Assembly (NCBI GenBank): GCA_950097015.1
Contig: CATNEN010000008.1
Span: 3,162,001-3,226,000 of the forward strand
Length of the DNA stretch: 64,000 bases
DNA from: Macrostomum hystrix
Lineage: Eukaryota; Animalia; Platyhelminthes
Direction: 5' to 3'
A program made the position numbers and the translations under genes. The notes beneath the pieces were generated by a model that was given only the letters and a program-made list of their open reading frames with translations, did no database searches and had not been told where the DNA came from. This document shows positions 368 to 51,356 of this stretch, one piece after another (the stretch's first letter is position 1; each line of letters starts with the position of its first letter).

Positions 368-3300
368 TCAGCACACGTACACGCCGTGGGTGGCGTTCTC
401 AAGATTGCAGTCGGAGTTCTCATACTCTGCACCTCTCGCTGTCTGCTGACTCAGGGCCTGAACCTGAAGCTCCGTTTCTCTACTGCGGCTCTGCTGTTGA
501 TTAAGTGAAAATCTCATGTACAAAATGCTCAGCTACATTCTAACACAAGCATGGTCCGGGCCAGAGAAAACACGTACCAAGCCGATGTGCTCCGACTGGT
601 CCGAACGCACAACCCCTCGGCAACAGCGGGGAAGAGCAAGACTGATAACACCGAGCTGCAAGCGAAAAAGCTCGACGAGTGAACTCACGCAAAGTGGTGG
701 ACATAGGTTCAAAGCGAAGAGGTGGACGTAGGTTCAATGCGAGGAGGCGGACGTAGGTTCAAGGCGAAGAGGTGGACGTAGGTTCAATGCGTGGAGGCGG
801 ACGTAGGTTCAATGCGAGGAGGCGGACGTAGGTTCGAGGCGAGGAGGTGGACGTAGGTTCAAGGCGAAGAGGTGGACGTAGGTTCAATGCGAGGAGGCGG
901 ACGTAGGTTCGAGGCGAGGAGGCGGACGTAGGTTCAATGCGAGGAGGCGGACGTAGGTTCAAGGCGAATTGGTGGACTTGGTTCAATGCGAGGAGGCGGA
1001 CGTAGGTTCAAGGCGAGGAGGCGGACGTAGGTTCAATGCGAGGAGGTGGACGTAGGTTCAGTGCGAGGAGGCGGACGTAGGTTCAATGCGAGGAGGCGGA
1101 CGTAGGTTCAATGCGAGGAGGCGGACGTAGGTTCAATGCGAGGAGGCGGACGTAGGTTCGAGGCGAGGAGGCGGACGTAGGTTCAATGCGAGGAGGCGGA
1201 GGTAGGTTCAATGCGAGGAGGCGGACGTAGGTTCAATGCGAGGAGGCGGACGTAGGTTCAATGCGAGGAGGCGGACGTAGGTTCAATGCGAGGAGGCGGA
1301 CGTGGGTTCGAGGCGAGGAGGTGGACGTAGGTTCAATGCGAGGAGGCGGACGTAGGTTCAAGGCGAAGAGGTGGACGTAGGTTCAAGGCGAAGAGGTGGA
1401 CGTAGGTTCAAGGCGAAGAGGTGGACGTAGGTTCAAGGCGAAGAGGTGGACGTAGGTTCAAGGCGAAGAGGTGGACGTAGGTTCAAGGCGAAGAGGTGGA
1501 CGTAGGTTCAAGGCGAAGAGGTGGACGTAGGTTCAAGGCGAAGAGGTGGACGTAGGTTCAAGGCGAAGAGGTGGACGTAGGTTCAAGGCGAAGAGGTGGA
1601 CGTAGGTTCAAGGCGAAGAGGTGGACGTAGGTTCAAGGCGAAGAGGTGGACTTATTTCAATGCAACAACACTCACCCAGATCAGTGCTGCCAACACACTA
1701 CCTATCAAAATGACTGCCGAAGAGAAGCCCCAGAAGAAGGACATCCTGAGCCTGCTCTTTGGAGTTGATCTAATCGTAGATTCACAAGTTCGCCCTGTTT
1801 GTAAGGTTTGTCCTGTCAGATTTTTTTGTTCAGATAACAAAAAAGTTGGACCTGTGGGTCGTGGGTCTGTGGGTTTGAATAATAAACTCAATAAATCGAA
1901 GCGAAATACTCGTAGAAGGCGACATCTATAAGACGAAAGGAAACCTCAATGAGTATAACTAGCAAGTTGAACTCACTACAGAACGACGAAGTGTTCTTTT
2001 AAGTTTACACAAACTGAAATTGGTTCTCATTTGTGTCCGCTCATTTTTAAATTGGTTCCCTTTCGATAAATGTTTTTTGGGAAATTGTCCTTTCGTAATC
2101 CCTTTAGATTAAATGTTTTACCTTGGACTCAGTTTTTTCGTAATTTAGTTTTCCTTGATATCCTTAATCACAACATCTATTATCCCTTGGATATCCCATT
2201 CCGCTCACTGATCTCTCATTCTCTCTCCCTTCCCCCGTTCTGATTGGTCCCCAACTGCTAAATATATTTTTCACTCACCCACTGTCTAGCCCCACCCCAC
2301 TGCCCCACTGGTGGTTTGTGAACCACCAGTCTTAAAAGTGCAATGCTGGGCCTGCTGCTTCCAGTATGCGCTCCTTTAAACAAGGGCTTTTTCAAACCAG
2401 CAAGCAAGTATTTTGATGTGATTTTACTCTCTTGTTTTCTCTACATCTCGAGTTCCCATTCTACAGGTTAGAATGGGATTTCCTAATTGTCATAAATCAG
2501 TTTTATGCAGCATTAGGCATGGAATCAAGATAAACCTAACATATTTCGAACTAGCCGAGTTTTATCTGCAGCCTGAGATCGGCAAAGCTCATGACGTCAT
2601 CATCACTGGTTTCCGGCACTTTGTTCAACACAAACTTCCTCAGCAGCAGGATGCGAGCCTTTTCTGTCTGTAGTGAAATGAAGCATCAATCATCAGTGTT
2701 TACATCAATCAATCATCAGTGTTTACATCAATCAATAATCAGTGTTTACATCAATCAATCATCAATCATTACAGTCGGCACTCACAAACAATAAGCAAAA
2801 GTCCAACATACCATGGGAGGATTGTCACATGACACAGTAATGTTCTCTCCAGCACTGATGCCACCCGGTGTTCTGTTCACAGCACCACAGAATCTCCAGT
2901 CGAACTTCGGATCCTTAAACTGGCTGCTCATCTGCCGTGCATTGCAATGGTCTGTTTGGAACACTTCATCCGATTTCGATGTCCAAATTTCTACACCAAT
3001 TAGTCTGTTGTAGTAGAAAGCACTGTAGTCTGGAAAACATCAAGAGGTTATCTTCTCAGAGATAAAATGTTCATTCATGTGGTCACATTTAGTGCGAAAA
3101 AGTAACACTGCAGTTGCTTAGCAACCGTGATAGAATATAGGGATAGTTGAAATTGGCAAGGAGCTGATCTTTGACTGTGTTTTAACAAACGACACTCACC
3201 CTCTAGGCCCTTTAATGTGACAGATAATATGAGCACTGGCTCACTCAGCTGCACTGCAAACCAGTGAAATCCCTCGTCTGATTCATTTTTGCCAGCGCTG

Positions 3301-3592
3301 TGAAAGAACCTGTAGCTGATGCTTTTACTGCTCAAAACAGACTCCTCGTCAGCCTGGCTTCTGTTGTTAAAGCAAGTTTGACCATCACCGAATGACGACT
3401 GCCATGAGTTGAGCACTCGGCTTCTTCGAATGGGGAGCTCAGCTGAAAATGGCAGCGCTATCACGTCGGTAAAAGGCTTGACAAAGATTACACAAAGATT
3501 ACACAACGATTACACAACGAAAACTTACATTTGTCACTCGCTTTTGCAAGCAAAATAAGGAAAAAATAAATAAGTGAGTTTTTAAAGCTCAT
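368..3592 (-). CDS. G1: F-type-lectin-like single-pass receptor with class A tail (SP-FTLD-TM-EYENS/GVYVC)
   Basis: Manually spliced exons (minus): 3592-3529 SP MSFKNSLIYFFLILLAKASDK; 3442-3200, 3029-2812 and 2667-2556 FTLD; 1794-1676 plus 655-578 TM SAVILIGSVLAALIW|LGVISLAL followed by PRCCR; 493-368 tail QSRSRETELQVQALSQQTARGAEYENSDCNLENATHGVYVC*. Phases are consistent. The donor after 2556 is GC rather than GT. Confidence 0.8.
697..1651. repeat. 25-bp minisatellite GGCGAAGAGGTGGACGTAGGTTCAA in the intron splitting the G1 TM
   Basis: Direct tandem units with two variant classes. Confidence 0.95.
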
Positions 3593-3647
3593 TTTAAAGA
3601 CTTATTTGACACACGCAAATGATTTCTTCCGTAAATTAATGGCAATT
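1807..3647 (-). repeat. Left arm of a ~1.84-kb inverted duplication (partner 5482-7331)
   Basis: Reads as the reverse complement of 5482-7331 along its length; the ORF track shows mirrored, near-identical ORFs (e.g. 3075..3506- and 5632..6063+). Confidence 0.92.
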
Positions 3648-4599
3648 TAAAATGGCAGCAGCAGCAGACTGGGGATGTTGAGCATTCAGCTGGAGTTGGC
3701 TGAGAACAGCTGATGAGTCTGTCCAGTAGATCGATTGGAAACAATTCTGCTTCACAATAATTTTAGGCTAGCGATAGCTTTGCTTAATAAGATGGCGCAG
3801 TAGATCTCTGTTATTCGGTATTAATATTTATGCTCGTATTTATAATTTCATGCGCGTCCCAGCTATTATAGGAATAGCAGATCGAAATCTTCAAGGGCTA
3901 GGGCCAATTTGGCTGTGAAGCTTTCAAAACCTGTACGTTTATCTTCCTGTGCTTTCTGTGGTGTAGAAATTTGGTGAATTTTAATTAAGTTCAGATTTTT
4001 CTAGACAGAACTTCAGTGCGACCTAAATTTTCTGCATTAGTCAGATCAGCAAATTTTTAGCTTTGAAAATTCAAATTGTCGCATTGACCGACGTGTCTCA
4101 GCCGCAACCCAGCCGCATCACTTTTTACAATCACTTGTACCACATGCAAAATCCGTCTTTCCTAATAGATTTTGACTAGATTTCATTGTACCACACGTTA
4201 AATTATCATCATATTGCTAAATATGTCACTTTTGAAGGCATCAAATTTCGGGATTTAAAAAAATCGGTGCTGCTGGCATTGGCTGATCACCGGCGCCCTC
4301 GCTTCTGACTAGATTATTGCACCGTTTTTAGCAAAAAATCATCGTCTGAAGTTTTAATGAAGTCATTCACGGCAGCAAATGGTCTTCTCTCTCCGAAAAT
4401 AGAATACATACGGCCTGTACCACATTTGTACCACCTCAAGCACATATTTTTATACAACCCTGTGCAAAATTAAGCATTTTGATCAAATGGTTTGAAAGTT
4501 ATAGACAAAATCCTTCGTTCAAATCTCGAAGGGGACAGTCGATACCCACGCCATAGAAGTTAGCAAAAAGTGTGGCTACCCAATAATATTTCTTAGGAA

Positions 4600-5240
4600 G
4601 TTGGCAGGATTCCGAACAGTCAGATTTAAACAGCTAATGCTGTCCTGCACAGACATCGAAAGCTTAGTCCTGTATGCCTCAGAGGTCTGGGCGCCTTTGT
4701 TTCCTGGAACTTGGGACCCTGGGATCGATAAAAACTAAATACTAATACTACAATTCAGTCAAAATACTGACAGCAATGGGGCCCGATCAGAAACTGGTAG
4801 ACTGCCTCTATTGCATGATATACAGAAAAGAAGCTTCCAGTTCTGGTCATCCCTATCTCATCGCCCTCCATTCTATCCTGGCTATTCGGGCTTCATTATA
4901 TCTAAGCTTATACGGGACCCGGAATACAGCGAAATAGGCATTGCAACAAAAATGAGTAGTGTTGTACTGCGAAACTGTTCTCTGAGCTCAAAGACAAAGT
5001 CTGTTAAAATTCACAGGGAAAACTTTCAATGCGATTTCCTGGGACACTGGAGACAGAGGGTCAAAATTCTGGCCATGCGTTCTGTTCGCCCGAAAATCCC
5101 TTATGAAAGCAGAATTTGCCCGAAGTGCAAAGTCGGGTTCGAAAATAAAGTACATTTTCTTTTCCGGTGGAACTGGGATCCTTATAAGGCGGTCAGGGAA
5201 AATTTCGTGGGAGAAATTTTATCCATAGTAAAGAACTTTT
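4600..5240 (+). mobile_element. LINE 3' fragment in the spacer between G1 and G2
   Basis: ORF 4811..5335 RSVRPKIPYESRICPKCKVGFENKVHFLFRW is homologous to the 19473-20230 copy. Confidence 0.7.
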
Positions 5241-5481
5241 GTGGTCTCGCAGCAATACAAGCGATACAAGCGATACCCCCAGAACAGTGCAGCACAATGC
5301 CTGTGCATAAGCTTGTGCTGTGCACAACCACCTAGGCGACCGTTCATTGGACTGTACAGCTTTTAAAAATTCATGTTGGCCAGCAGGAAATAACTTTTCA
5401 AACGGTGGGTTTATTATCTAGGCCTGGAGGCGTTGACTAAAAATGAACACGTAATTAACTGCGTTTCAAGATTTCCATTAG

Positions 5482-7331
5482 TTGCTATTAATTTACGGAA
5501 GAAATCATTTGCTTGTGTCAAATAAGTCTTTAAAATGAGCTTTACAAACTCACTTATTTATTTTTTCCTTATTTTGCTTGCAAAAGCGAGTGACAAATGT
5601 AAGTTTTCGTTGTGTAATCGTTGTGTAATCTTTGTGTAATCTTTGTGTAATCTTTGTCAAGCCTTTTACCGACGTGATAGCGCTGCCATTTTCAGCTGAG
5701 CTCCCCATTCGAAGAAGCCGAGTGCTCAACTCATGGCAGTCGTCATTCGGTGATGGTCAAACTTGCTTTAACAACAGAAGCCAGGCTGACGAGGAGTCTG
5801 TTTTGAGCAGTAAAAGCATCAGCTACAGGTTCTTTCACAGCGCTGGCAAAAATGAATCAGACGAGGGATTTCACTGGTTTGCAGTGCAGCTGAGTGAGCC
5901 AGTGCTCATATTATCTGTCACATTAAAGGGCCGAGAGGGTGAGTGTTGTTTGTTAAAACACAGTCAAAGATCAGCTCCTTGCCAATTTCAACTATCCCTA
6001 TATTCTATCACGGTTGCTAAGCAACTGCAGTGTTACTTTTTCGCACTAAATGTGACCACATGAATGAACATTTTATCTCTGAGAAGATAACCTCTTGATG
6101 TTTTCCAGATGACACTACAGCTTTCCAATACAACAGACTAATTGGGGTAGAAATTTGGACATCGAAATCGGATGAAGTGTTCCAAACAGACCATTGCAAT
6201 GCACGGCAGATGAGCAGCCAGTTTAAGGATCCGAAGCTCGACTGGAGATTCTGTGGTGCTGTGAACAGAACACTGGGTGGCATCAGTGATGGAGAGAACA
6301 TTACTGTGTCATGTGACAATCCTCCCATGGTATGTTGGACTTTTGCTTATTGTTTGTGAGTGCTGACTGTAATGATTGATGATTGATTGATGTAAACACT
6401 GATTATTGATTGATGTAAACACTGATGATTGATTGATGTAAACACTGATGATTGATGCTTCATTTCACTACAGGCAGAAAAGTCTCGCATCCTGCTGCTG
6501 AGGAAGTTTGTGTTGAACAAAGTGCCGGAAACCAGTGATGATGACGTCATGAGCTTTGCCGATCTCAGGCTGCAGATAAAACTCGGTTAGTTCGAAATAT
6601 GTTAGGTTTATCTTAATTCCATGCCTAATGCTGCATAAAACTGATTTATGAAAATTAGGAAATCCCATTCTGACCTGTAATAGAACTCAAGGTGTAGAGA
6701 AAACAAGAGTGTAAAATCACATAAAAAAACTTGCTTGCTGGTTTGAAAAAGCCCTTGTTTAAAGGAGCGCATACTGGAAGCAGCAGCTAGCAGGCCCAGC
6801 ATTGCACTTTTAAGACTGGTGGTTCACAAACACTCCTGGGGTGGCGTTAGACAGTGGGTGAGTGAAAAATATATTTAGCAGTTGGGGACCAATCAGAACG
6901 GGGGAAGGGAGAGAGAATGAGAGATCAGTGAGCGGAATGGGATATCCAAGGGATAATAGATGTTGTGATTAAGGATATCAAGGAAAACTAAATTACGAAA
7001 AAACGAAATCCAAGGTAAAACATTTAATCTAAAGGGATTACGAAAGGACGATTTCCAAAAAAACATTTATCGAAAGGGAACCAATTTAAAAATAAGTGGA
7101 CACAAATGAGAACCAATTTCAGTTTGTGTAAACTTAAAAGAACACTTCGTCGTTCTGTAGTGAGTTCAACTTGCTAGTTATACTCATTGAGGTTTCCTTT
7201 CGTCTTATAGATGTCGCCTTCTACGAGTATTTCGCTTCGATTTATTGAGTTTTATTATTCAAACCCACAGACCCACGACCCACAGGTCCAACTTTTTTGT
7301 TATCTGAACAAAAAAATCTGACAGGACAAAC
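5482..7331 (+). repeat. Right arm of the inverted duplication (partner 1807-3647)
   Basis: As for the left arm. Identity stops just upstream of the two different TM-exon acceptors. Confidence 0.92.
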
Positions 7332-7965
7332 CCTGACGTCAAATACGTGCACCTTCCAAGGGCGACTAACCAGCTGCTCAGCACTCGTCTTCATCGCGAG
7401 TACGCTGGTCTTGTGCATTCTGATCATCGCTTTCATCTGTGGATTTCTGCTGGTTCGTTTTTTTTAACTTTTGCTCGGTGATTTTGTTTTACTGCTTCTG
7501 TTGGAGCAACTTTCAAGCCGATGTGTCCTCAAACATTTCAGCTCAAACTAAAGCCCAACTGTGCTCGACAAAGTCCCGACTACCGGCTGAAACGGCGAAT
7601 GCCATCAAGCAGGATCTCCCAAGCTCCAATTGCTATCAAGGCACCTGTAGTGCCTCAGGTAAATTTTGCAAGTTGTCAGTTCGTGTTGTCAAAGGTTGTC
7701 AAATTCGACGGGCATGCACCTTGATTATGACAATTACCTGAAAATGTAATTCTGTCAGATTTCTTTTGCAAAGCAAATGTTTTGTAAGCCAACCTGCCTA
7801 CCATACCATCAGCAGCAGGTGGAGGCAGAGCTGTTGCCCAGCAACCCAGGTGAGTCCGAATGCAGCTACATGTCGCTGAGTTTAAGTAAAGCAGCCCCCA
7901 ACAATGACCTGGAGGAGGACTGCGCCAGCGACTGCACCGTCTACATCGAAATTGTACGTGGCTGA
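5535..7965 (+). CDS. G2: F-type-lectin-like single-pass receptor with class B ITIM/ITSM-like tail
   Basis: Exons: 5535-5598 SP MSFTNSLIYFFLILLAKASDK; 5696-5938, 6109-6329 and 6474-6585 FTLD; 7361-7452 TM SALVFIASTLVLCILIIAFICGFLL; 7542-7658; about 7819-7965 tail ...SECSYMSL...SDCTVYIEIVRG*. All GT-AG, open frame. Confidence 0.85.
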
Positions 7966-9779
7966 TCTCAAGTCTGCTCTAATACGAGTCGAGACATTTG
8001 AGTTTAAAATTATTACAGTCGTTCTTACAAGCCAGATAGCATCAAGTTAAGACAGTTATTTCAGTCATGGCCGCAAACTGTGCCTGCCTACTCTTGCACT
8101 TTCAAGCTGTTTTGACATGCGTCAATACTCAATCGATTTTGTCTTAAAAAGTTAATACTCTTGATCTTCATCTATCCGCTGCATGAATTTTGTTAAAATC
8201 GAGATTTTATATTTGATAAACATTCTGTCAACATGTTGGGAATGTTTAATAATAATGAAAAACATATACACACTGGCTCCAGCATTCCTGGAACATATTT
8301 GCTGGTTTCACAATTCAAAATTTGAAACCTCCTAATTATAGACATGCAGCACACATGCCTCCAGGTATTCTTGGCTTTATTATTTAGAAGTCTGGAACGC
8401 CTGAAATAAATCAAGGTTGGTTCTGATGAATTTTGCTTTCACCAGATAAACCGGAAGCCATCACAGCAACAGTTGCAGGCGCTTGGTGCCATTCTCAAAT
8501 TCCAGCAGATTATGAACATGTATAAACACGATGTGTGGATTATTACTAAATGTATTGCAATAATTTGACCTAAGTCACGTTATAAACTTTTGGCATTGCT
8601 TAACGTAAACTGCACGACAAGCCGCCAAACCTTCTCCCCGCTGCTGCGTCCAAAATTAATGTGCCCCGCCGCAGAATAGAGCTCAAGGACCATCATGCGA
8701 GAGGCAAACCCGTTAGTCCGCTTCTCCACTCACCCCCTCGACATAGACTTGCAAAAGATGGAAAGTTTTTCTAAAACATTTTCTCTTCAGGTGAGTTTCC
8801 CATTCGCCAGGGTCGAGTGCTGAGTTCGTGGCAGTCATGGGACTTGACGGCCAGCTCTGCTTCCATAACAAGTCGAGTTACTCAGAGAACGCAGACTCAA
8901 ACAGCGTAAGGTTCAGCTTGAGATTTTTTCACAGCTCTAACAGCAGCCAAGTAGATGGTGGATTTCACTGGTTCGGAGTGCAGCTGAATGAGTCACTGTG
9001 AAGGGCAGAGAAGGTAGGCAGTAAAGTGCAGAATATGCAAGTAGGTCTACGTACACCGCTTCAACTCACTGCCGTCACATTTCAGAAGGCAGAGCGGAAG
9101 GCATTGAGATCTGGGCATCAGACAGCCGTGAAATATTTTCAGGCCATCACTGCAGATCGAGCAACATTAGCAGACAGTTTGAGGAGTCTCGGTTGCTATG
9201 GAGACGGTGCGGCACTACACAGAGAGAACATCAGGAAATTTTGGCTGGTGAAGTCTTCACTGTGGAATGCACCGCTAGTGTGAGAGCTTTAATAAAGTAC
9301 TCGCCTATTCACACACCGCATATACCAGCTGAAATTATGGAATTCGTTGAATAACCCGCAGGTCCGCCAGCTGCTACTCCGCAAGGACGTCACCCGAGCT
9401 AATGCTAACAGCTTCCTGGAATTCGCGGATCTCAGACTTCAGACATTGCAACTAAGTAAAGCTCTTATTTCACTTACGAAATGAGGCCTTAACAGTAGAT
9501 CACACAATTTTAAATGGTATTTCAAATACCCACAGATCACTTCACGATGGCCACAAAACCGAATGAAAATCCACCATCTGGATCAAACTTTTCCGCTCTA
9601 TACGATGAACTAACTTTCAAAGCCGTCCGAGTCAAAAAGAAAAAAACTACCAGTAACAACATAATCAATACAATATTGGCAACAATAATAGCAGGCATGG
9701 TTAAATTGTTAAATGTTGAAATTTTGTGAGCAGAAAAATTATGCCTAATTGCCGCTTGTATTTGTGTCGGACTTGGCAC

Positions 9780-10690: not shown

Positions 10691-10959
10691 CCAGGGAACT
10701 GTTGACTAATATGAATTTCACCTGTCATCCGACAAATTTCACAGGATGACGAAAGCGGTCTGATTCGGTGCAGACAAAATTTGATTCTATAGAAAAATTT
10801 AATCCAAGCAAACGATGACAAATAGTTGTAGATGAGACAAACAGCTGCTTCATTTAATTGTGTACATTGAATTGGAAAATACACTTCACCCTGTTTCTGT
10901 TTCTTCAAAATCTGTGATTCCATAGAAAAATCTCCCAAGCATAAAGAGCTGCTTATATA

Positions 10960-11741
10960 CCTGACACTACCTGACACTACCTGACACTACCTGACGCTAC
11001 CTGACGCTACCGGACACTACCTGACACTACCTGACACTACCTGACACTACCTGACACTACCTGACACTACCTGACACTACCGGACACTACCGGACACTAC
11101 CTGACACTACCTGACACTACCTGACACTACCTGACACTACCTGACACTACCTGACACTTCCTGACACTACCTGACACTACCGGACACTACCTGACACTAC
11201 CTGACACTACCTGACGCTACCGGACACTACCGGACACTACCTGACACTACCTGACACTACCTGACACTACCTGACACTACCTGACACTACCGGACACTAC
11301 CGGACACTAACTGACACTACCTGACACTACCTGACACTACCGGACACTACCGGACACTACCTGACACTACCTGACACTACCTGACACTACCTGACACTAC
11401 CTGACACTACCTGACACTACCGGACACTACCTGACACTACCGGACACTACCTGACACTACCGGACACTACCGGACACTACCTGACACTACCTGACACTAC
11501 CTGTTCATCTACCAACTGCCTGACCATCTACCAACTGCCTGACCATCTACCAACTGCCTGACCATCTACCAACTGCCTGACCATCTACCAACTGCCTGAC
11601 CATCTACCAACTGCCTGACCATCTACCAACTGCCTGACCATCTACCAACTGCCTGACCATCTACCAACTGCCTGACCATCTACCAACTGCCTGACCATCT
11701 ACCAACTGCCTGACCATCTACCAACTGCCTGACCATCTACT
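10960..11741. repeat. Adjacent 10-bp (CTGACACTAC) and 19-bp (TGACCATCTACCAACTGCC) arrays
   Basis: 10-mer about 10960-11503, 19-mer about 11506-11741. Confidence 0.95.
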
Positions 11742-12099
11742 CAATTGAGTTTCTTGAGCAACCATTTAGACGCCGCCCTTGACTTGCTAAAATATGTTTT
11801 GAATGAAACATTTTCCAGCGAACTAAAATAAAAAAAATTGTTTGTTTTTGTTTCAGTAACAATCATTTCTAACTATATACGAGCGTATTAGATCTATTTT
11901 AAAAAAGCTGGTTGACAGCTGCAAACTGTCTATCCCGGGTCTAGCTTGTCTCTAATTTTAGTTAGGTGAGTAATCAAAAAATTTATCAAAAATTTATTTA
12001 AAATATATATTTGTATTTGAAACGTATAAAACAGGTAGAATATAAAATGTTCTTTTTTGCAAGGAAGCATGACATTTTTTTATTAATATAACAGCAAGT

Positions 12100-13099: not shown

Positions 13100-13878
13100 T
13101 GCAGGTAGTGTGCAGGTAGTGTGCAGGTAGTGTGCAGGTAGTGTGCAGGTAGTGTGCAGGTAGTGTGCAGGTAGTGTGCAGGTAGTGTGCAGGTAGTGTG
13201 CAGGTAGTGTGCAGGTAGTGTGCAGGTAGTGTGCAGGTAGTGTGCAGGTAGTGTGCAGGTAGTGTGCAGGTAGTGTGCAGGTAGTGTGCAGGTAGTGTGC
13301 AGGTAGTGTGCAGGTAGTGTGCAGGTAGTGTGCAGGTAGTGTGCAGGTAGTGTGCAGGTAGTGTGCAGGTAGTGTGCAGGTAGTGTGCAGGTAGTGTGCA
13401 GGTAGTGTGCAGGTAGTGTGCAGGTAGTGTGCAGGTAGTGTGCAGGTAGTGTGCAGGTAGTGTGCAGGTAGTGTGCAGGTAGTGTGCAGGCAGTGTGCAG
13501 GTAGTGTGCAGGTAGTGTGCAGGTAGTGTGCAGGTAGTGTGCAGGTAGTGTGCAGGTAGTGTGCAGGTAGTGTGCAGGTAGTGTGCAGGTAGTGTGCAGG
13601 TAGTGTGCAGGTAGTGTGCAGGTAGTGTGCAGGCAGTGTGCAGGCAGTGTGCAGGTAGTGTGCAGGTAGTGTGCAGGCAGTGTGCAGGTAGTGTGCAGGT
13701 AGTGTGCAGGTAGTGTGCAGGTAGTGTGCAGGTAGTGTGCAGGTAGTGTGCAGGTAGTGTGCAGGTAGTGTGCAGGTAGTGTGCAGGTAGTGTGCAGGTA
13801 GTGTGCAGGTCGTGTGCAGGTAGTGTGCAGGTAGTGTGCAGGTAGTGTGCAGGTAGTGTGCAGGTAGTGTGCAGGTAG
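13100..13878. repeat. 11-bp array GCAGGTAGTGT abutting the DIRS remnant
   Basis: Direct tandem units; source of the HYLHTTCTLPA ORFs. Confidence 0.95.
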
Positions 13879-13984
13879 TTGCTGGTGCCCCACCCCCCAT
13901 ACAACGCCTCACACCCGGCCCAATGCACAAACACAGACAAGCAGGTATGGAGAAGACATGGGTTAAAGTATTTTTTATTAGCTT

Positions 13985-20500: not shown

Positions 20501-23500
20501 CTGCACCTGTGTGAGTCTCGCATTGCTTCAATTGCTTTTCACTAATTAATCTTACTCGAAATTGTTCGTGTGTCGCCCGATGATCTTTTCTAAATGTAGC
20601 AAATTGTTTGCAGACACATGCAGCTCAAATGATCACAAACACTGGACAGGGAATTTCGGCAAAGAAATGTGCTTTGAGTTGAAATATTGGTCAACAAGAG
20701 TACTGAAAAAACTGAAAACAATATTCAACTTAAGTTGTTGCTCTGGGTTTACAACTGTGTTTTTTGACAGTAGAACGACCTCGCTATTTCCCCACTGGCA
20801 AAATACTACAAGGGAAATTTCCAATAGCCACTTCAGGATAGCTCCCAAACCATCGACAATACAATGCTTCGGCATTCTGGAAGTTGTCTCATCGGATAGA
20901 GTAAGGGAGATAAAGGAATAAAATAAAAATGTGGGTATTCATTCTAGCTACAAATCTCAGCCATTTACCAATCGTGGCCTGCTTGATAAATTTTAGGCGA
21001 CTTTCGAGTTAGGAAGAAGCACACTACCAGCGCATGGCAGTCCTCCAGCTTCCTGAACTCGTGCTTCCACAACAAAAGCGAGTCTTTGGAATCAGAGGAG
21101 TTGAATGATAAAGCAAAAAGTTATAACTTTTTCCACAGTGAAGGCAAAAGCCAATCACGCAGCGGGTTTCACTGGTTCGCTGTGAAGCTTCGAAAGCCAG
21201 TGCTTGTCAGATCGGTAACTGTGAAGGGCAGAGAGGGTGAGTCACATTCTCTTTTGTGCTCAGAGATCTAGTCTCAAAACACTAAGAATGCCACTTTGAG
21301 ACGATTGAGCAGGTCTGGCTTCTCAATTGCAGATGACAAAAACTGTACCTATGCCAGAGCCAAAGACATTGAAGTGTTCGTGTCGAACCGCAGCAGTCAA
21401 ATCTTCTTCGGTGACCACTGCAGCTCCACAAGCATCAGCGCTGAGTTTCACAACTCCCTGAGTGACTGGACGCGATGCGGCAAGACTCAGAAGGAGGGAG
21501 CCATCTCAGCCGGTGAAATTTTCACCGTGGACTGCGCCAGTCAGGTGGGGAAATGCTGAAATCAGCAATGTCATGCAGACCAAGAATGATGGCCTTCACT
21601 CCGTTTCAGGGCACTGAGGAGTCCGCATTTCTGGTTTGGCATTTGCTGCTCAGAAGAAATGCATCGGAAGACGACGGCTACATGAGCTTCGCAGACCTCG
21701 GCCTTCAGACTCTGTCCTTGAGTAACCAGCTTTTGTACTGGCATTGCATGAGTTCATTCGGCAGTTTTTGGAGATGCAGCAGGGAACTGGCATTGCATGA
21801 GTTCATTCGGCAGTTTTTTCGGAGATGCAGCAGGGAACTGGCATTGCATGAGTTCATTTGGCAGTTTTTGGAGAACTGGCATTGCATGAGTACATTCGGC
21901 AGTTTTTGGAGATGCAGCAGGGAACTGGCATTGCATGAGTTCATTCGGCAGTTTTTTCGGAGATGCAGCAGGGAACTGGCATTGCATGAGTTCATTTGGC
22001 AGTTTTTGGAGAACTGGCATTGCATGAGTACATTCGGCAGTTTTTGGAGATGCAGCAGGGAACTGGCATTGCATGAGTTCATTCGGCAGTTTTTGGAGAA
22101 CTGGCATTGCATGAGTTCATTCGGCAGGTTTTGGAGATGCAGCAGGGAACTGGCATTGCATGAGTTCATTCGGCAGGTTTTGGAGATGCAGCAGGGAACT
22201 GGCATTGCATGAGTTCATTCGGCAGGTTTTGGAGATGCAGCAGGGAACTGGCATTGCATGAGTTCATTCGGCAGGTTTTGGAGATGTAGCAGGGAACTGG
22301 CATTGCATGAGTTCATTCGGCAGGTTTTGGAGATGCAGCAGGGAAATGGCATTGCATGAGTTCATTCGAAAACGCCATCCGCCTTCCAGGGGCGGAGAGT
22401 CCTGAGCTGGTGGCTGAGAACTCCAGCTTCACAGTGAGCTGCTCAAGGCGCTGCACCGGCTCGCAGCAGCTGAGCACGAGCTCAAGCGACCTGCGGCTCT
22501 GCCCTCCGAACGGCAGCTGCGTCTCTGAGAACCGGCTGGAAGTTGCTCAAGCTCAGCCTGGGGACTCAGGAGTCTACACTTGCAGGGCTGGTCCACTGGC
22601 GATGCCGACTGCCGTCACCGTTCTGAGTGAGTGCTCACATTTTCAGATGAGTACTCTTTAAAGTGCTGTTTTGAGATTATGGATAACATTTACATTCTCG
22701 AGCCCCGCCTCTCCAGCTTCCACTCCCCATCAAGTGGTCGCTGAGAACTCCAGTCTCAGTCTGAGCTGCTCTCTGCACTGCGGTAATGCAACTCATTGTG
22801 CTGACTTTGGTCCACTCGGGCGACCGCGGCTGTGCTCTCCTAGCAACAGCTGCATCGATGACGCCACGCTCCGGATCGATGCCGTGGCTGCAGCCCAGTC
22901 AGGGAGCTATGAGTGCAGACTGGACTCAGCAGTCGCTGTGAGCCGTGTCAGTGTGCTCAGTGAGTGAACTCTATTTACAATGCATTTTACCTGTGGTACA
23001 GTGCGCATAGAAACTCACTGGCCGTCCGCAGCTCTGACTCCGGATCAAGTTGTTGCCGAGAAGTCGAGTCTGAGACTGGACTGCGTGCTGCACTTCAAGG
23101 ACACTGCCGACTCCCAGAAGCTTCTGCAGCTCTTCTTTCCTAACGGCAGCCTTGATCCAGGCTCCTCAATCAGCATAGCTAGGGCTCGACCCTCACACTC
23201 CGGCTTGTACCGATGCAGGCATCAGTCAGTTGAAGTTGGATCGTTTGTCACCGTGCTGTGTAAGCTTCATCACCTTCTCCTGACTTTCAGAATAGAACTG
23301 ACTGCTCACAATCCAAGGCCTTCATATCCCTAACCAATATTTCACCTTCATCACCTTCTCCTGACTTTCAGAATAGAACTGACTGCTCACAGTCCAAGGC
23401 CTTCATATCCCTAACCAATATTTCAGCTTCATCACCTTCTCCTGACTTTCAGAATAGAACTGACTGCTCACAGTCCAAGGCCTTCATATCCTTAACCAAT

Positions 23501-26500
23501 ATTTCAGCTTCATCACCTTCTCCTGACTTTCAGAATAGAACTGACTGCTCACAATCCAAGGCCTTCATATCCTTAACCAATATTTCAGCTTCATCACCTT
23601 CTCCTGACTTTCAGAATAGAACTGACTGCTCACAGCCCAAGGCCTTCATATCCTTAACCAATATTTCAGCTTCATCACCTTCTCCTGACTTTCAGAATAG
23701 AACTGACTGCTCACAGTCCAAGGACTTCATATCCCTAACCAATATTTCAGCTTCATCACCTTCTCCTGACTTTCAGAATAGAACTGACTGCTCACAGCCC
23801 AAGGCCTTCATATCCTTAACCAATATTTCAGCTTCGTCACCTTCTCCTGACTTTCAGAATAGAACTGACTGCTCACAGCCCAAGGCCTTCATATCCCTAA
23901 CCAATATTTCAGCTTCGTCACCTTCTCCTGACTTTTAGAATAGAACTGACTGCTCACAGCCCAAGGCCTTCATATCCTTAACCAATATTTCAGCTTCGTC
24001 ACCTTCTCCTGACTTTCAGAATAGAACTGACTGCTCACAGCCCAAGGCCTTCATATCCCTAACCAATATTTCAGCTTCGTCACCTTCTCCTGACTTTTAG
24101 AATAGAACTGACTGCTCACAGCCCAAGGCCTTCATATCCTTAACCAATATTTCAGCTTCGTCACCTTCTCCTGACTTTCAGAATAGAACTGACTGCTCAC
24201 AGCCCAAGCCCTTCATATCCCTAACCAAAATTTCAGCTTCGTCACCTTCTCCTGACTTTCAGAATAGAACTGAATGCTCACAGCCCAAGGCCTTCATATC
24301 CTTAACCAATATTTCAGCTTCATCGCCAGACCAACTGTTGCCTGTGAGCAGCCAGTTCTCGGTGAGGTGCTCACTGCACTGCAATGCCTCGGATCTGAGC
24401 TGCAACTCGAGTCATCTGCAGCTGTGCCCTCCGACTGGCAGCTGCGTCCGAGGCCAGCTGCTGAATGTCACGAATGCGCAGCCCTGGCACTCCGGCAACT
24501 ACAGTTGCAGATTCGGCAGGGCGGTGAAGTCAGCTTCAGTCTCAGTTGTGTGTGAGTAGCCATTCTGTTAAGAATTCGTTCAAGGCCGTTTCGTATCAAG
24601 CGAACATCTCGCCATGCTTTCTGGTGCACTTTTCAGTGACAAAAACTTTTCTATCCTAATTTAAACTGCAGGTAAATTCGCGATCCGCAGAAGCCGCATA
24701 TTGGCATCTTGGCAGTCATCCTACTTTACAGATCAGTCTCACACTTCCACTTGTTTTCATCCCCGAGATGCAGAGGTGGATAGACAAGCTGTGGGCAACT
24801 GGTGGTTCTTCCACAGCTCTGAGCAGAGCCAAGCAGACGGAGGATTTCACTGGTTCGCAGTGCAGCTGGCTGAGCCAGTTCTCATCAGATCAGTCACTGT
24901 GGTGGGCAGAAGTGGTGAGTGAAAGTCTACACAATGTCACCATTGCCTTTTTCTAATCAAAGAAGATCTTCAAGTGATCTTCAGAAAGTAAAATTAGTGA
25001 AATAGAAATTTTATTAGTTTCGCTGAATGCAATTAAAGAAAGATTTGAGCAGTTAATGAGGGACTCAGATTTTTAATTAAGGACTACAAAACTAGTTTGA
25101 GTGTTGTCAAGCATAATTATTTAATGCGCGGGCCAATAGGGATGCTGTTTTCTACTTCTTTAATAAAACAACATTGCGATATTTTCGGATTTCGAGACAA
25201 CAAGAAGGACCAAGTAGTTAGCTAGTACTGGTAGTAGTATGAGTTAGTTAGTAGTTAGTCTATTCCAGTAGTCCTTGGTCAATAAATGAAGGTTGTGGAG
25301 TTGGGTCGAAGCAACTCGAAACGAACTCGGAATTTCAGATGCCGGTGAGCATCACGATGCCTACAAGAGAGTACTGAGCATAGAAATCTTCACTTCAAGC
25401 AGCAGCAGGGCCATCTTCTCTGGCGACCACTGCGCCTCGAAGAACATGAGCAGACTGTTCAATGAGTCTAGTAGTCTCTGGAGACCATGCGGCCAGACTC
25501 GGAAGGAAGGGACAATCTCACCAGGTGAAATCTTCACTGTCAGCTGCGTTGCTGAGGTGAGTGAGTGAGTGAAGCACTGCCAATTAATTATTGCAGACAC
25601 ACCGGTGAATGAATCTCTGAACTGCAGGTGCGACAGCTGCTTTTGAGACGGGCTGCGAATGCGAAAGCTGAGAACGATCAATACATGAACTTTGCGGACC
25701 TCATAGTTGAGACAGGATCTATAAGTAATTAATCATTTCATTTTTTTCTTTGCCTTGCCTAAATTTTCAGTTGAGTTAGCTTTGATACTGTCTATGCAAT
25801 TGGATTGAGTTAGCTTTGATAGTGTCTATGCAATTGGATTGAGTTAGCTTTGATAGTGTCTATGCAATTGGATTGAGTTAGCTTTGATAGTGTCTATGCA
25901 ATTGGATTGAGTTAGCTTTGATAGTGTCTATGCAATTGGATTGAGTTAGCTGATTTAGTGTCTATGCAATTGGATTGAGTTAGTTTTGATAGTGTCTATG
26001 CAATTGGATTGAGTTAGCTTTGATACTGTCTATGCAATTGGATTGAGTTAGCTTTGATAGTGTCTATGCAATTGGATTGAGTTAGCTTTGATAGTGTCTA
26101 TGCAATTGGATTGAGTTAGCTTTGATACTGTCTATGCAATTGGATTGAGTTAGCTTTGATACTGTCTATGCAATTGGATTGAGTTAGCTTTGATAGTGTC
26201 TATGCAATTGGATTGAGTTAGCTTTGATAGTGTCTATGCAATTGGATTGAGTTAGCTTTGATACTGTCTATGCAATTGGATTGAGTTAGCTTTGATACTG
26301 TCTATGCAATTGGATTGAGTTAGCTTTGATAGTGTCTATGCAATTGGATTGAGTTAGCTGATTTAGTGTCTATGCAATTGGATTGAGTTAGCTTTGATAC
26401 TGTCTATGCCATTGGATTGAGTTAGATTTGATAGTGTCTATGCAATTGGATTGAGTTAGCTGATTTAGTGTCTATGCAATTGGATTGAGTTAGTTTTGAT

Positions 26501-29500
26501 AGTGTCTATGCAATTGGATTGAGTTAGCTTTGATACTGTCTATGCAATTGGATTGAGTTAGCTTTGATAGTGTCTATGCAATTGGATTGAGTTAGCTTTG
26601 ATAGTGTCTATGCAATTGGATTGAGTTAGCTTTGATAGTGTCTATGCAATTGGATTGAGTTAGCTTTGATACTGTCTATGCAATTGGATTGAGTTAGCTT
26701 TGATAGTGTCAATGCAATTGGATTGAGTTAGCTTTGATAGTGTCTATGCAATTGGATTGAGTTAGCTTTGATAGTGTCTATGCAATTGGATTGAGTTAGC
26801 TTTGATACTGTCTATGCAATTGGATTGAGTTAGCTTTGATACTGTCTATGCAATTGGATTGAGTTAGCTTTGATACTGTCTATGCAATTGGATTGAGTTA
26901 GCTTATTTAGTGTCTAAGCAATGCGATAAGTTTTCAATCCAAGAAGTGAGAGCTAAAATAGTCGAGACTGAAAGCCGCAGTGCTTCAACAGAGCTCTTCC
27001 CGCTCCCTACAACCGCAGGAGTCGCGAGTCCTCAGCTGGTGGCCGAGAGCTCCAGCTTCTCTGTGAGCTGCGAGCTGCACTGCAATGTCACCGATTTGAG
27101 CACAGACTCAGGCCAGATGCGGATCTGCTCTTCAGATGGCAGGTGTTCAGAAAATCAAACGCTGCTGATTAGCAAAGCGCAGCCTGTCCATTCTGGAAAG
27201 TACACTTGCAGACTCGGCTCCAGTGACCGCAGTCTGTCGACCACAGTCTCCGTGCTCTGTGAGTTTCCCAATGACCCCAGATCCTCTGACAAGCTGCTGA
27301 AAGTATCAAGGAATATAGATTCTCAGGTAGAAATATTGCAGTGCACCTGTCGGCTAATCTTGTAAACGTAAAAAACATTTCAGCGTCTTCTCCAAGCCAA
27401 GTGGTCGCGATGAACTCCGAGCTCTCTGTGAGCTGCTGGCTGCACTGCAACAGCTCGGAGCAATGCCCGAACTCAGGTGACCTTCAGTTGATCCTGCCAA
27501 ACGGTAGCCACGTGTCGGGCAAGAATCTGAGGATTGTCCGTGCGCAGCCAGGTAACGCAGGTGAATACACCTGCGCTGCTGGGAATGTCACGAAGCGGAC
27601 CGCTGTGGCTTTGCTGTGTGAGTCTCGACTTCTGCGAGTTCATCTGGCTCTGCTTTTCTTAACACTAAATGATTAGTATGATCAAATGATACGTCAGATT
27701 TTGAGCCCGGAGTTCTGTGCGCGAGTACATGGATAATTACGTAGATATCCTAACTTAGTCTTCAACCAAAATGTTTTGAGAAGTGCCCATGAGAAGGCCA
27801 ATTTTGGAAATGCGAATGCTAATTTAAAAACCAAAGCGATCAATCCCATGTACTTATGAGTGGCTGTGAGCCATTGTTGTGACGCTTTTGATTGATAGAA
27901 TCCTCATTCACAAGCCATATCCCATCAACTGCAGCCGCAACACCTGACCAAGTGGTCGCGCATGGTTCAAAGCTCTCTGTGAACTGCTCACTGCTCTACC
28001 CTGACTCCAAGGCTTTCCATGAGCCGCAGGTCTGTCTTCCGAACGGCAGCTGCACCAGAAAAGCGTCTGTGGAAATTTTGAGCTCAACTCCTCAGGACGC
28101 TGGAGTCTACAAGTGCAAGCTGAACTCAACAGAAGTGGAGTCGGTTGTCACTGTGCTGTGTGAGTCTCACATCCATTCTCAGCTTCCTTGAGCACGGATA
28201 CTCAGTTTTGACTAACAGCTCTTTCGTTGCAGCATCGACTCCAGACTTGACTGTGGTGGCAAACACAAGCTTCACAGTTGAATGCTCATTGCACTGCGGC
28301 TCTGAGAGCTGCAGAGTGCAGGGGCAAGTTCAGCTCTGCTTTCCTAACGGCAGCTGCTCGGAGACTGGAGAAAATCGCAGGCTAGTAGAGATTCTCAGAG
28401 CACAGCCTCAGCACTCAGGCAACTACACTTGCAGAGCCGGATCTGCTGCCAAGTCAGCATCGGTCACCGTGATTTGTAAGAAAATTGGCTATAAATTTTA
28501 CATGCTAGAATGAACAATACGGTATGCACAGCCAGTCCTTCGGGTACGTACTTCATGTGGTCTAATACTTCCCGACAACATTCCACACTCATAGCAGTGC
28601 TTGATACGCATCTAGTTAGAGCTTGTAGACCTGCAGTTAGAGCATCGGACTCCTGACCAAGAGGTCCGAAGTTCGAATCTCAACCCATGAGATATCATAT
28701 GTGCCCTTGATTCCCCAATTCGGTTCACCCAGCTGTCAAATCGGTACCAGAATTAGCTGGGATAGAAATTTAGGATCGTGTGATGGCCCCCCGTCCACGG
28801 ACTGAACAGTTGTACACAGCCTCTCGCCTCGCTGCCAAGTCGTAGCTATAGCTGTGACTTGTGCCATAGACAGTACACATTGCCCAGCTGTGCTAGGTGT
28901 CACATCTCTCCGTGTAAAACTAACAGTAAAAGCGAAGCGCCTCGGACCTCCCTGCAGACCCGCCGACAAACGTGTCAGTCACGCTGCTGAATTCGCACAA
29001 TTGCACCATTGTGTCAGACATCATCGTCAGCTTTAGCTCCTCAGAATCTCACCCGCTACCTGAGCACAGGTGCCATGCAGTAGGTGGTGGAGTCATTAAA
29101 CAATCCACACTGCTATCAACTGTGAGTTTTGACTTCATTCTATGAGCAATATTGAATTGTGAGCACGCAATGGAATGCAAAATTTTCTAGCTTTTCGAAA
29201 TTTCAGAACACCAGCGAGAACGGCTCAAGAGTTAGTCTGTGGCGTCTTGTTAGTGTTGGAGATCGCTGGCTGGATGCAAGCAGGGGTACAGTTCATTGCG
29301 CTGCTGCTCACAATGGATCGACCACCAGCCCATTCAGCTACGTCTCAGAAAATAGTGCCAGTTGGACTTGCGGCAAATCAAAAGGTACTGGTAGATCGCA
29401 GAGCAGTGCTTCTCTTCTCGCGGCTCTGGGAGGAATCAGTGCTGCGACATTGGTGGCTGCGCTGGTCATCTTCCTGACAACAACACTGGTTAGTGATGCA

Positions 29501-43500: not shown

Positions 43501-46500
43501 TTAGGTCTGTGAACTAACATTCGGGAGTCAAGCAGCAGAACGAAATCATACAGACTGGAAATAATTCAGACCTGACACATCCTGAACCTGACACTTCCTG
43601 AACCTGACACTTCCTGAACCTGACACTTCCTGAACCTGACACTTCCTGAACCTGACACTTCCTGAACCTGACACTTCCTGAACCTGAGACTTCCTGAACC
43701 TGACACTTCCTGAACCTGACACTTCCTGAACCTGACACTTCTTGAACCTGACACTTCCTGAACCTGACACTTCCTGAACCTGAATCTTCCTGAACCTGAT
43801 ACTTCCTGAACCTGACACTTCCTGAACCTGACACTTCCTGAACCTGACACTTCCTGAACCTGACACTTCATGAACCTGACACTTCCTGAACCTGACACTT
43901 CCTGAACCTGACACTTCCTGAACCTGACACTTCCTGAACCTGAATCTTCATGAACCTGACACTTCCTGAACCTGACACTTCCTGAACCTGACACTTCCTG
44001 AACCTGACACTTCCTGAACCTGACACTTCCTGAACCTGACACTTCCTGAACCTGACACTTCCTGAACCTGACACTTCCTGAACCTGACACTTCCTGAACC
44101 TGACACTTCATGAACCTGACTCTTCCTGAACCTGACACTTCCTGAACCTGCGACTTCCTGAACCTGACACTTCCTGAACCTGCGACTTCCTGAACCTGAC
44201 ACTTTCTGAACCTGACACTTCCTGAACCTGAATCTTCCTGAACCTGAGACTTCCTGAACCTGAATCTTCCTGAACCTAACACTTCCTGAACCTGACACTT
44301 CCTGAACCTGAATCTTCCTGAACCTGACACTTCCTGAACCTGACACTTCCTGAACCTGAATCTTCCTGAACCTGACACTTCCTGAACCTGACACTTCCTG
44401 AACCTGACACTTCCTGAACCTGACACTTCCTGAACCTGACACTTCATGAACCTGACACTTCCTGAACCTGACACTTCCTGAACCTGCGACTTCCTGAACC
44501 TGACACTTCCTGAACCTGAATCTTCCTGAACCTGAGACTTCCTGAACCTGAATCTTCCTGAACCTGACACTTCCTGAACCTGACACTTCCTGAACCTGAC
44601 ACTTCATGAACCTGACACTTCCTGAACCTGACACTTCCTGAACCTGAGACTTCCTGAACCTGACACTTCCTGAACCTGAATCTTCCTGAACCTGACACTT
44701 CCTGAACCTGACACTTCCTGAACCTGACACTTCATGAACCTGACACTTCCTGAACCTGACACTTCCTGAACCTGACACTTCCTAAACCTGACACTTCCTG
44801 AACCTGACACTTCTGAACCTGACACTTCCTAAACCTGACACTTCCTGAACCTGACACTTCCTGAACCTGACACTTCCTGAACCTGACACTTCCTGAACCT
44901 GACACTTCCTGAACCTGACACTTCCTGAACCTGACACTTCCTGAACCTGACACTTCATGAACCTGACACTTCCTGAACCTGACACTTCCTGAACCTGACA
45001 CTTCCTGAACCTGACACTTCCTGAACCTGACACTTCCTGAACCTGACACTTCCTGAACCTGACACTTCATGAACCTGACACTTCCTGAACCTGACACTTC
45101 CTGAACCTGCGACTTCCTGAACCTGACACTTCCTGAACCTGCGACTTCCTGAACCTGACACTTTCTGAACCTGACACTTCCTGAACCTGAATCTTCCTGA
45201 ACCTGAGACTTCCTGAACCTGAATCTTCCTGAACCTGACACTTCCTGAACCTGACACTTCCTGAACCTGAATCTTCCTGAACCTGACACTTCCTGAACCT
45301 GACACTTCCTGAACCTGAATCTTCCTGAACCTGACACTTCCTGAACCTGACACTTCCTGAACCTGACACTTCCTGAACCTGACACTTCCTGAACCTGACA
45401 CTTCATGAACCTGACACTTCCTGAACCTGACACTTCCTGAACCTGCGACTTCCTGAACCTGACACTTCCTGAACCTGAATCTTCCTGAACCTGAGACTTT
45501 CTGAACCTGACACTTCCTGAACCTGAATCTTCCTGAACCTGAGACTTCCTGAACCTGAATCTTCCTGAACCTGACACTTCCTGAACCTGACACTTCCTGA
45601 ACCTGAATCTTCCTGAACCTGACACTTCCTGAACCTGACACTTCCTGAACCTGAATCTTCCTGAACCTGACACTTCCTGAACCTGACACTTCCTGAACCT
45701 GACACTTCCTAAACCTGACACTTCCTGAACCTGACACTTTCTGAACCTGACACTTCCTAAACCTGACACTTCCTGAACCTGACACTTCCTGAACCTGAGA
45801 CTTCCTGAACCTGACACTTCCTGAACCTGAATCTTCCTGAACCTGACACTTCCTGAACCTGACACTTCCTGAACCTGACACTTCATGAACCTGACACTTC
45901 CTGAACCTGACACTTCCTGAACCTGACACTTCCTAAACCTGACACTTCCTGAACCTGACACTTTCTGAACCTGACACTTCCTAAACCTGACACTTCCTAA
46001 ACCTGACACTTCCTGAACCTGACACTTCCTGAACCTGAGACTTCCTGAACCTGACACTTCCTGAACCTGAGACTTCCTGAACCTGACACTTCCTGAACCT
46101 GACACTTCCTGAACCTGACACTTCCTAAACCTGACACTTCCTGAACCTGACACTTTCTGAACCTGACACTTCCTGAACCTGACACTTCCTGAACCTGACA
46201 CTTCCTGAACCTGCGACTTCCTGAACCTGACACTTTCTGAACCTGACACTTCCTGAACCTGACACTTCCTGAACCTGACACTTCCTGAACCTGACACTTC
46301 CTGAACCTGACACTTCCTGAACCTGACACTTCCTGAACCTGAATCTTCCTGAACCTGACACTTCCTGAACCTGACACTTCCTGAACCTGAATCTTCCTGA
46401 ACCTGACACTTCCTGAACCTGACACTTCCTGAACCTGAATCTTCCTGAACCTGACACTTCCTGAACCTGACACTTCCTGAACCTGAGACTTCCCCAAACC

Positions 46501-51288: not shown

Positions 51289-51356
51289 GAGAATATGAGA
51301 TTATTTGGCCAAGAGCTATTGGCTCAAGGAATGAAATTTGGTGACACAATGTGTTT

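Follow-up and report, generated by a model that had tools for sequence, protein, structure and literature searches.

A 64,000-nucleotide stretch of the Macrostomum hystrix genome (contig CATNEN010000008.1 of assembly GCA_950097015.1, forward-strand positions 3,162,001 to 3,226,000; hereafter the window, in whose own numbering all positions are given) carries two receptor genes arranged head to head, G1 on the minus strand and G2 on the plus strand. The evidence supports both as real, transcribed genes of type I membrane proteins that have near-identical ectodomains and different transmembrane (TM) segments and tail classes. The best explanation overall for this organization, to which we assign a probability of roughly 0.6, is ectopic conversion or recombination between clustered inverted paralogs.

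Repeat finding and global alignment delimited an inverted repeat of ~1.85 kb, whose arms (1805-3647 and 5482-7332; Table 1) are 98.1% identical over 1825 ungapped columns, with 34 substitutions and 10 indel events. Its size and identity far exceed what could arise by chance. Each arm holds the exon with the start codon and signal peptide and the three ectodomain exons, together with every intervening intron. This agrees with a previous analysis made from the letters alone (the sequence-only reading), which had described arms of ~1.84 kb (1807-3647 and 5482-7331) with the same content, and divergent ATG codons about 1.9 kb apart; these codons, at 3592 (minus) and 5535 (plus), are separated by 1.94 kb. 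Nucleotide similarity was searched for past either arm end and none was detectable. The same reading let the identity stop within about 30 nt of the TM-exon acceptors, but this has to be corrected. The G2 exon-5 acceptor defined by RNA is at 7271, 54 nt upstream of the position assumed before (7325), so that the identity of the two genes extends 62 nt into the exon coding for stalk and TM segment and ends within the stalk. The shared segment corresponds to 20 codons (DPRPTGPTFLLSEQKNLTGQ).

Over exons 1-4 and their introns the identity of G1 and G2 is 95% for amino acids and 98% for nucleotides, the near-identity of ectodomains that characterizes paired receptors. Ten amino acids are replaced between the ectodomains, which also differ by one residue indel and by one synonymous change, giving proportions of nonsynonymous (pN) and synonymous (pS) differences of 0.0255 and 0.0068, the latter from that single change, next to an intron divergence of ~2%. 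These figures would fit neutral or diversifying change, the counts being too small for a test. Since exons and introns diverged alike and in a neutral-looking manner, the event was probably recent and copied the introns as well. Of the changes, five are concentrated in eight residues where exons 2 and 3 meet (DDTTAFQY in G2, D-YSAFYY in G1). A compensated frameshift is found there (6109-6128 in G2, 3029-3013 in G1), with +5 and -2 nt within 11 nt and restoration of the frame; the same CTACAG is read in two frames, altering 4-5 residues of a loop that is hypervariable among paralogs. Intron 4 has another 13 substitutions and 5 indels within its initial 265 nt. The spacing of the differences was assessed by permutation in place of a GENECONV-type test, which is not meaningful for two near-identical sequences with unalignable outgroup introns. 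The differences are significantly clustered, with 16 events inside 250 nt (P=0.005), and the longest stretch free of them measures 312 nt (P=0.016), which hints at tracts of different ages.

Transcription and splicing were followed in contigs of three RNA runs, X2 and X4 (from one independent 2020 study) and X7. These are short de Bruijn contigs whose splicing identifies them as RNA-derived. Introns 1-5 of G2, all with GT..AG ends, were confirmed by contigs of the three runs. The X7 contigs are spliced, although the run had been presumed to be DNA, and are identical to G2 over five exons; the run is labelled as another organism, and no diverged species is apparent in this region. Its G2 contig has 22 unaligned letters upstream of 5445. 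G1 is transcribed at roughly half the level of G2 in these contigs and is spliced. Its exon 5 is covered in part by X2 record 9 (1676-1834) and X4 record 14 (1676-1813), both of which splice out at 1676. The loose end of X2 record 9 reads window positions 626-655, which is the predicted exon-6 acceptor, across a 1-kb intron. Exon 6 (655-578), absent from the sequence-only reading, is thus an additional short exon that separates the last exon from the TM exon. The donor of G1 intron 4 is GC, not GT. Each of the proteins, of 343 (G1) and 361 (G2) amino acids, has a signal peptide and five N-glycosylation sequons, besides a single strongly hydrophobic segment and a cytoplasmic tail.

The tails belong to two classes. 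As described previously, G1 ends with AEYENSDCNLENATHGVYVC and a stop codon (493-368, minus strand), and G2 with ECSYMSL...DCTVYIEIVRG and a stop codon (up to 7965). The C-terminal motif of class A is EYENS...G[VI]Y[VI]x-COOH. Class B is defined by EC-S-Y-x-S-[LV] followed 25-32 residues on (25 in G2) by DCTVY[IL]EI. Comparison of the G1 and G2 tails revealed no significant similarity. Both classes are found in Macrostomum lignano proteins, which bear only automatic names and are ~70-76% identical to the window family in the best-conserved exon. P0002 (A0A1I8H6B9) and P0013 (BOX15_Mlig012084g1) share the architecture of G2 and its class-B tail, while P0003 (A0A1I8GJD6), P0006 (A0A1I8JJS2) and P0014 display the class-A motif; the class-A proteins carry an extra Ig-like region, which G1 lacks. 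The TM, juxtamembrane and tail segments of G2 are 39% identical to those of P0013 and P0002 over 116 amino acids (E 2e-17 and 3e-18, respectively), and the last 18-19 amino acids of G1 are 61-63% identical to the M. lignano class-A proteins (E about 8e-6 to 1e-4; 63% over 19 amino acids in the match with E 8e-6). By these matches, both tail classes are older than the separation of the two species.

A second pair in the window, G6 and G7, has the same composition. It forms a direct repeat (48544-51291 and 57661-60399) that is 97-99% identical and ends in one class-A (G6) and one class-B (G7) tail. The G1 C-terminus matches that of G6 (72% over 18 amino acids, E 1e-5) and the G2 tail matches the last exon of G7 (E 2e-6). 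The TM exon, too, belongs to the repeat of this pair (both genes read …HAIIVSTVVCSILAVLILGSVLRFLTTQ), and only the cytoplasmic tails differ; the membrane is therefore no fixed boundary of identity. Exon 2 of G6 contains an in-frame stop (48867-48869, plus strand; CF*TRAS where G7 has Gln), which is due either to a pseudogene allele or to an assembly error.

Ectodomains and tails have separate histories, as the sequence-only reading anticipated. In the ectodomain tree G1 groups with G2 (100/100) and G6 with G7 (100/99). By tail, G1 belongs with G6 and the class-A proteins of M. lignano, and G2 belongs with G7 and those of class B. Such discordance is what gene conversion or recombination should leave behind, and conversion would be its source rather than a one-off chimeric duplication. 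G1 and G2 would be members of a clustered family of type I receptors with a divergent F-type-lectin-like ectodomain, G2 being related over its full length to the class-B receptors of M. lignano and sharing their TM and juxtamembrane segment. G1 would have retained its own promoter-proximal 5′ untranslated region (UTR), its own TM segment and the class-A C-terminal motif, while its sequence from 55 nt upstream of the ATG to codon 20 of exon 5 would be a 98% copy of G2, introns included. Non-allelic homologous recombination (ectopic gene conversion) between the inverted paralogs would have overwritten the ectodomain-coding half of G1, and the same overwriting would have arisen independently in G6/G7.

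Several points weigh against this scenario. In the one genome examined, conversion may have been recurrent or a single event. The absence of detectable similarity beyond the arm ends keeps a one-step partial inverted duplication with non-homologous breakpoints as a rival. Depth is 0 over 2000-3399 in runs X2, X4 and X7, with no G1-type contig of exons 2-4, in contigs that drop minor variants; no single contig ties the G1-type ectodomain to the G1 TM segment because the contigs end 31 nt into the shared sequence, and the linkage of the G1 ectodomain variants to that segment rests on the assembly. G1 displays three derived states that are possibly damaging, namely an Arg to Leu change at a conserved site, a Tyr to Cys change in the class-A motif and the GC donor. 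Finally, the motifs of both tail classes are short and their binding partners putative.

The rival that survives best is a single recent partial inverted duplication. Here a 1.85-kb copy of the 5′ half of G2 would have been placed beside the 3′ portion of a class-A gene, either unrelated or older, creating the chimera in one step and without ongoing conversion. It is suggested by the sharp arm ends, by a divergence uniform enough for one event ~2% ago and by the single M. lignano locus examined, in which no comparable inverted repeat was found. Nor was a near-identical A/B pair seen in this locus. Conversion is nevertheless favoured because a random 1.85-kb insertion would have to have landed in frame in the stalk/TM exon and just downstream of a working core promoter (TATA/5′ UTR), and because the outcome would then have to have recurred in G6/G7, where the boundaries are different. 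The significant clustering of the arm differences also speaks against one event. So does, as a hint, the order of elements in the M. lignano locus (L001; NIVC01002544.1): a kinase gene, a minus-strand exon-2 relic, then family members on the plus strand. The relic (2083-2196, 38 amino acids) lies between the gene coding a tyrosine-kinase domain and that of the class-B protein P0013, and its complementarity to exon 2 amounts to 86-89% in three copies located downstream; it weakly suggests that an inverted neighbour is old. Altogether a single duplication appears unlikely.

Another explanation is that G1 is a decaying chimeric by-product, transcribed while becoming a pseudogene, and that its pairing with G2 has no function. 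A pN/pS ratio above 1 with pN about equal to the intron divergence would fit decay, as would the exclusive loss in G1 of a conserved Arg (see below), its Cys in place of the middle Tyr of the class-A motif, its GC donor and the in-frame stop of G6, the class-A member of the second pair. Against it, the 343-codon open reading frame (ORF) of G1 is intact in spite of the +5/-2 indel pair, which restores the frame; the gene is transcribed and spliced; YENS and the terminal GVYVC are kept; and a single synonymous change does not suffice for a test. G1 may be eroding, but we consider it quite improbable that this accounts for the pair.

An assembly artefact, in which a read folded back on itself or a haplotype copy was joined the wrong way round, is very unlikely: the ~2% arm divergence is within the allelic range of outbred invertebrates and the structure is covered by short contigs, but the arms are separated by a unique spacer of 1.8 kb and run out into functional exons that differ, contigs of DNA run X1 contain each of the four arm/unique junctions, with a word depth of ~124 in arm contigs and 75-84 in the four unique flanks (~1.5x), and RNA of another study joins the shared sequence to each unique 5′ UTR and each unique TM exon. 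In the X1 arm contigs, letters of G1 type alternate with those of G2 type, the pattern that a two-copy repeat gives when it is collapsed and its bubbles are popped.

The organization of the spacer between the arms does not support a shared bidirectional promoter, which had been proposed for the pair. In such a promoter region the divergent starts would be expected less than ~1 kb apart, but the RNA 5′ ends of G1 (3816/3817, where the contigs of X2 and X4 both stop) and G2 (5445 or upstream) are at least 1.63 kb apart, with the high-copy repeat at 4000-5200 and its LINE-like ORF fragment between them. Each of these 5′ ends adjoins unique sequence (3648-3817, transcribed in two runs, for G1; 5445-5481 for G2), and the runs differ in which 5′ UTR they hold. 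A compact ancestral promoter that was later split by insertion of the repeat is possible. The spacer ORF (4811-5335, plus strand) resembles the zinc-knuckle C-terminus of a non-LTR (long terminal repeat) retrotransposon ORF and has a relative at 57-227 on the minus strand, just past the G1 stop codon; the two fragments share R.VRPKI.YE.R.CPKC.V..EN.. and gave no match in a Pfam search.

The nature of the ectodomain was addressed by profile, language-model and structure searches. Single-exon translations had no match in Pfam. A language-model search with exon 2 led to F5_F8_type_C_2 clusters, and M. lignano P0002 scored 16.7 and 14.5 bits against Pfam F5_F8_type_C and F5_F8_type_C_2 (E 0.008 and 0.055), below the cut-offs of ~28. 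A profile of exon 2 built from eight window copies matched 12 proteins among 1.84 billion representatives; 11 matches are credible, ten of them from M. lignano and one from a metagenome contig. None was identical to a protein of the window, and the M. lignano homologs served as proxies for the window proteins. In the databases searched the receptor family thus appears, by sequence, to be lineage-restricted to Macrostomum. The structure model represents P0013, the homolog from M. lignano, rather than G1 or G2 themselves, and was made from an alignment that included the window exon pieces (pLDDT 82.7, pTM 0.83). It adopts the beta-jelly-roll of eel fucolectin (1k12), its best match (Foldseek E 2e-6, VIA Z 12.3, 22% identity, 146 residues aligned), followed by Morone FBP32 (3cqo, Z 12.0) and Streptococcus lectinolysin (3LEI, Z 11.4). 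Identity to the F-type lectins is 19-22% over 140-146 residues, and other galactose-binding-like modules follow closely (Z 10.5-11.5). In the PDB the family profile matched two sequences only, both F-lectins, with marginal E values (0.016 and 0.046). The F-type lectin domain (FTLD) named in the sequence-only reading is therefore upheld at the level of the modelled fold and by these marginal profile matches, but not by the curated family models, for which scores stay below threshold. With such evidence, the ectodomain should be termed F-type-lectin-like and divergent, full FTLD membership going beyond it.

In the profile alignment the family segment SVTvKG-R-E-D corresponds to SVTITN-R79-G-D81 of the eel protein. 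With respect to the fucose motif His...Arg-x-Asp-x4-Arg, R-E-D thus lies on R79-G-D81, a longer loop shifts the second Arg out of place and the register of His is uncertain. The CC-G-E-R86 segment of F-type lectins is replaced in the Macrostomum family by a longer, hypervariable loop, the one at the exon 2/3 boundary, which comes after the Arg aligned with Arg79. This position, at which Arg79 binds fucose in the eel protein, is occupied by Arg in 9 of the 11 other family copies and G1 alone has Leu. The ligand would presumably be a glycan. F-type lectins are mostly secreted, whereas the Macrostomum family is anchored in the membrane and has tails with tyrosine motifs.

The G2 tail has an exact immunoreceptor tyrosine-based switch motif (ITSM) of the type TxYxx(V/I), TVYIEI. 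The segment CSYMSL, 25 residues upstream, is a YxxL with Cys at position -2 and not a canonical tyrosine-based inhibitory motif of immunoreceptors (ITIM), whose pattern is (I/V/L/S)xYxx(L/V/I). Both Tyr residues are conserved in G7 and in M. lignano. The ITIM/ITSM pairs of PD-1, PECAM-1 and Siglecs, which the class-B tail resembles, dock tandem-SH2 phosphatases. G2 may accordingly signal by docking of the SH2-phosphatase type through its ITSM and YxxL, and the term inhibitory fits it by motif only. YENS of the class-A tail is a pYxN, a Grb2-type site, and G1, with YENS and the terminal GVYVC in a cytoplasmic tail of ~60-70 amino acids, would signal differently (pYxN-type docking) or weakly. 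The TM segment of G1 (FFWGFSSAVILIGSVLAALIWLGVISLAL) is devoid of K, R, D and E. Such an uncharged segment, combined with a long YxN tail in place of the short tail and charged TM segment of receptors that partner an adaptor with a tyrosine-based activation motif of immunoreceptors (ITAM), makes G1 distinct from a classical activating partner. An ITAM reading of the class-A tail itself was rejected, since the spacing and positions of YENS, EYKLE and G[VI]Y[IV]x misfit YxxL/I-x6-12-YxxL/I. Of the inhibitory/non-inhibitory pair maintained by conversion that had been envisaged, the different tails and the ectodomain/tail discordance hold, while G1 does not qualify as classical activating partner.

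Other elements of the cluster are listed here for completeness. A third family copy, G3 (8790-9270, plus strand), follows G2 immediately downstream; frameshifts and stops interrupt its homology to exons 2 and 3, and it is probably a pseudogene. A direct repeat of ~970 nt (37445-38413 and 41167-42138, 97.6%) overlaps in part a minisatellite of 15-bp period. The introns and spacers of the cluster are full of long minisatellites with periods of 8 to ~80 bp. They dominated the self-BLAST of the window, from which three long dispersed pairs were kept.

Table 1. Features of the G1/G2 locus and minisatellites of the window. Strand is given as + or -; a dot stands for features without strand.
Feature	Position	Strand	Description
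Arm A	1805..3647	-	G1 proximal 5′ UTR (55 nt), exons 1-4 with introns, first 62 nt of exon 5
Arm B	5482..7332	+	same parts of G2 as arm A of G1
Spacer between arms	3648..5481	.	unique; 4000-5200 is a high-copy repeat (X1 depth 700-2000 vs ~80)
G1 candidate core promoter	3836..3843	-	TATAAATA; ~20-27 nt upstream of RNA 5′ end; inferred from sequence and contig ends
G1 coding model	3592-3529, 3442-3200, 3029-2812, 2667-2556, 1866-1676, 655-578, 493-368	-	343 amino acids
G1 exon 1	3529..3817	-	5′ UTR from ~3817; ATG 3592-3590; signal peptide MSFKNSLIYFFLILLAKASDK; donor after 3529
G1 exon 2	3200..3442	-	first half of lectin-like domain; ends ...TLKGLE, Leu where family has Arg
G1 exon 3	2812..3029	-	second part of domain; first 20 nt vs G2: +5/-2 compensated indel, 2 substitutions
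G1 exon 4	2556..2667	-	GC donor (ctcg|gctagt) vs GT in G2
G1 exon 5	1676..1866	-	stalk and TM ...MSFFWGFSSAVILIGSVLAALIW; only first 62 nt inside arm; acceptor 1866 inferred from identical G2 site
Minisatellite, 25-bp	690..1650	.	fills G1 intron 5 (656-1675); spliced out
G1 exon 6	578..655	-	LGVISLALPRCCRGVVRSDQSEHIGL; TM end and juxtamembrane; 5′ junction by RNA contig; donor 577 predicted (gtacgt)
G1 last exon	368..493	-	class-A motif AEYENSDCNLENATHGVYVC and stop; exon-6 junction read from sequence
G2 coding model	5535-5598, 5696-5938, 6109-6329, 6474-6585, 7271-7452, 7542-7658, ~7813/7819-7965	+	361 amino acids
G2 exon 1	5445..5598	+	ATG 5535; 5′ UTR to at least 5445 (X7 record 22, X4 record 18); joint 5598>5696
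G2 exon 2	5696..5938	+	RNA joints, GT..AG
G2 exon 3	6109..6329	+	RNA joints
G2 exon 4	6474..6585	+	RNA joints
G2 exon 5	7271..7452	+	stalk and TM ...SALVFIASTLVLCILIIAFICGFLL; joint 6584/5>7270/1 in three runs
G2 exon 6	7542..7658	+	LKLKPNCARQSPDYRLKRRMPSSRISQAPIAIKAPVVPQ; joint 7451>7541; donor predicted
G2 last exon	7813..7965	+	class-B tail ...ECSYMSL(x18)DCTVYIEIVRG*; predicted acceptor 7813, 7816 or 7819 (cagcagcag)
Minisatellites	690-1650, 10838-11780, 13100-13886, 23263-24324, 25771-26922, 43565-46533, 52730-55706, 60750-62523	.	

Vertebrate paired receptors follow the same genomic logic as the locus, which is new in its parts and in its lineage. Siglec-5/14 and Siglec-11/16 are vertebrate paired receptors homogenized by gene conversion (see also PMC13358205). 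As in G1/G2, vertebrate pairs are adjacent paralogs with near-identical ligand-binding halves, introns included, and an identity that stops abruptly before the membrane/signalling part. One partner has tandem Tyr motifs of ITIM/ITSM type, which those of G2 resemble, and the other can bear signs of erosion (human SIGLEC14-null, SIGLEC16P), as G1 may. KIR, LILR, PILR and SIRP are further vertebrate paired-receptor sets. The differences are equally clear. The vertebrate genes are not homologous to those described here and code for an Ig V-set domain in place of a lectin-like jelly-roll; their activating partners rely on a charged TM residue and a short, adaptor-dependent tail, unlike G1; and the Siglec-type pairs differ from G1/G2, which are head to head and in a flatworm. 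A literature search on flatworm F-type lectin receptors and on invertebrate paired receptors homogenized by conversion found nothing relevant.

In vertebrates, paired receptors homogenized by conversion count as a hallmark of the innate immune receptor families. The same genomic logic is seen here in a lophotrochozoan, with an unrelated ectodomain and with Tyr-motif tails conserved between two Macrostomum species. We tentatively propose that this flatworm lineage independently evolved paired receptors with an ITSM/YxxL inhibitory-type and a YxN version, in a cluster beside a JAK-like kinase gene, whose ectodomain halves are repeatedly homogenized by ectopic conversion while the binding-pocket loop and the key Arg diverge between partners. 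It is a doubtful proposal for now, and follows the decoy/counter-receptor arms-race logic put forward for vertebrate paired receptors. The G1/G2 locus is a clean natural case of inverted-paralog recombination yielding chimeric expressed genes. If independent pairing holds, the paired-receptor design would evolve convergently, and regenerating flatworms amenable to transgenesis (M. lignano and relatives) would gain a testable candidate system for self/non-self recognition or microbe sensing.

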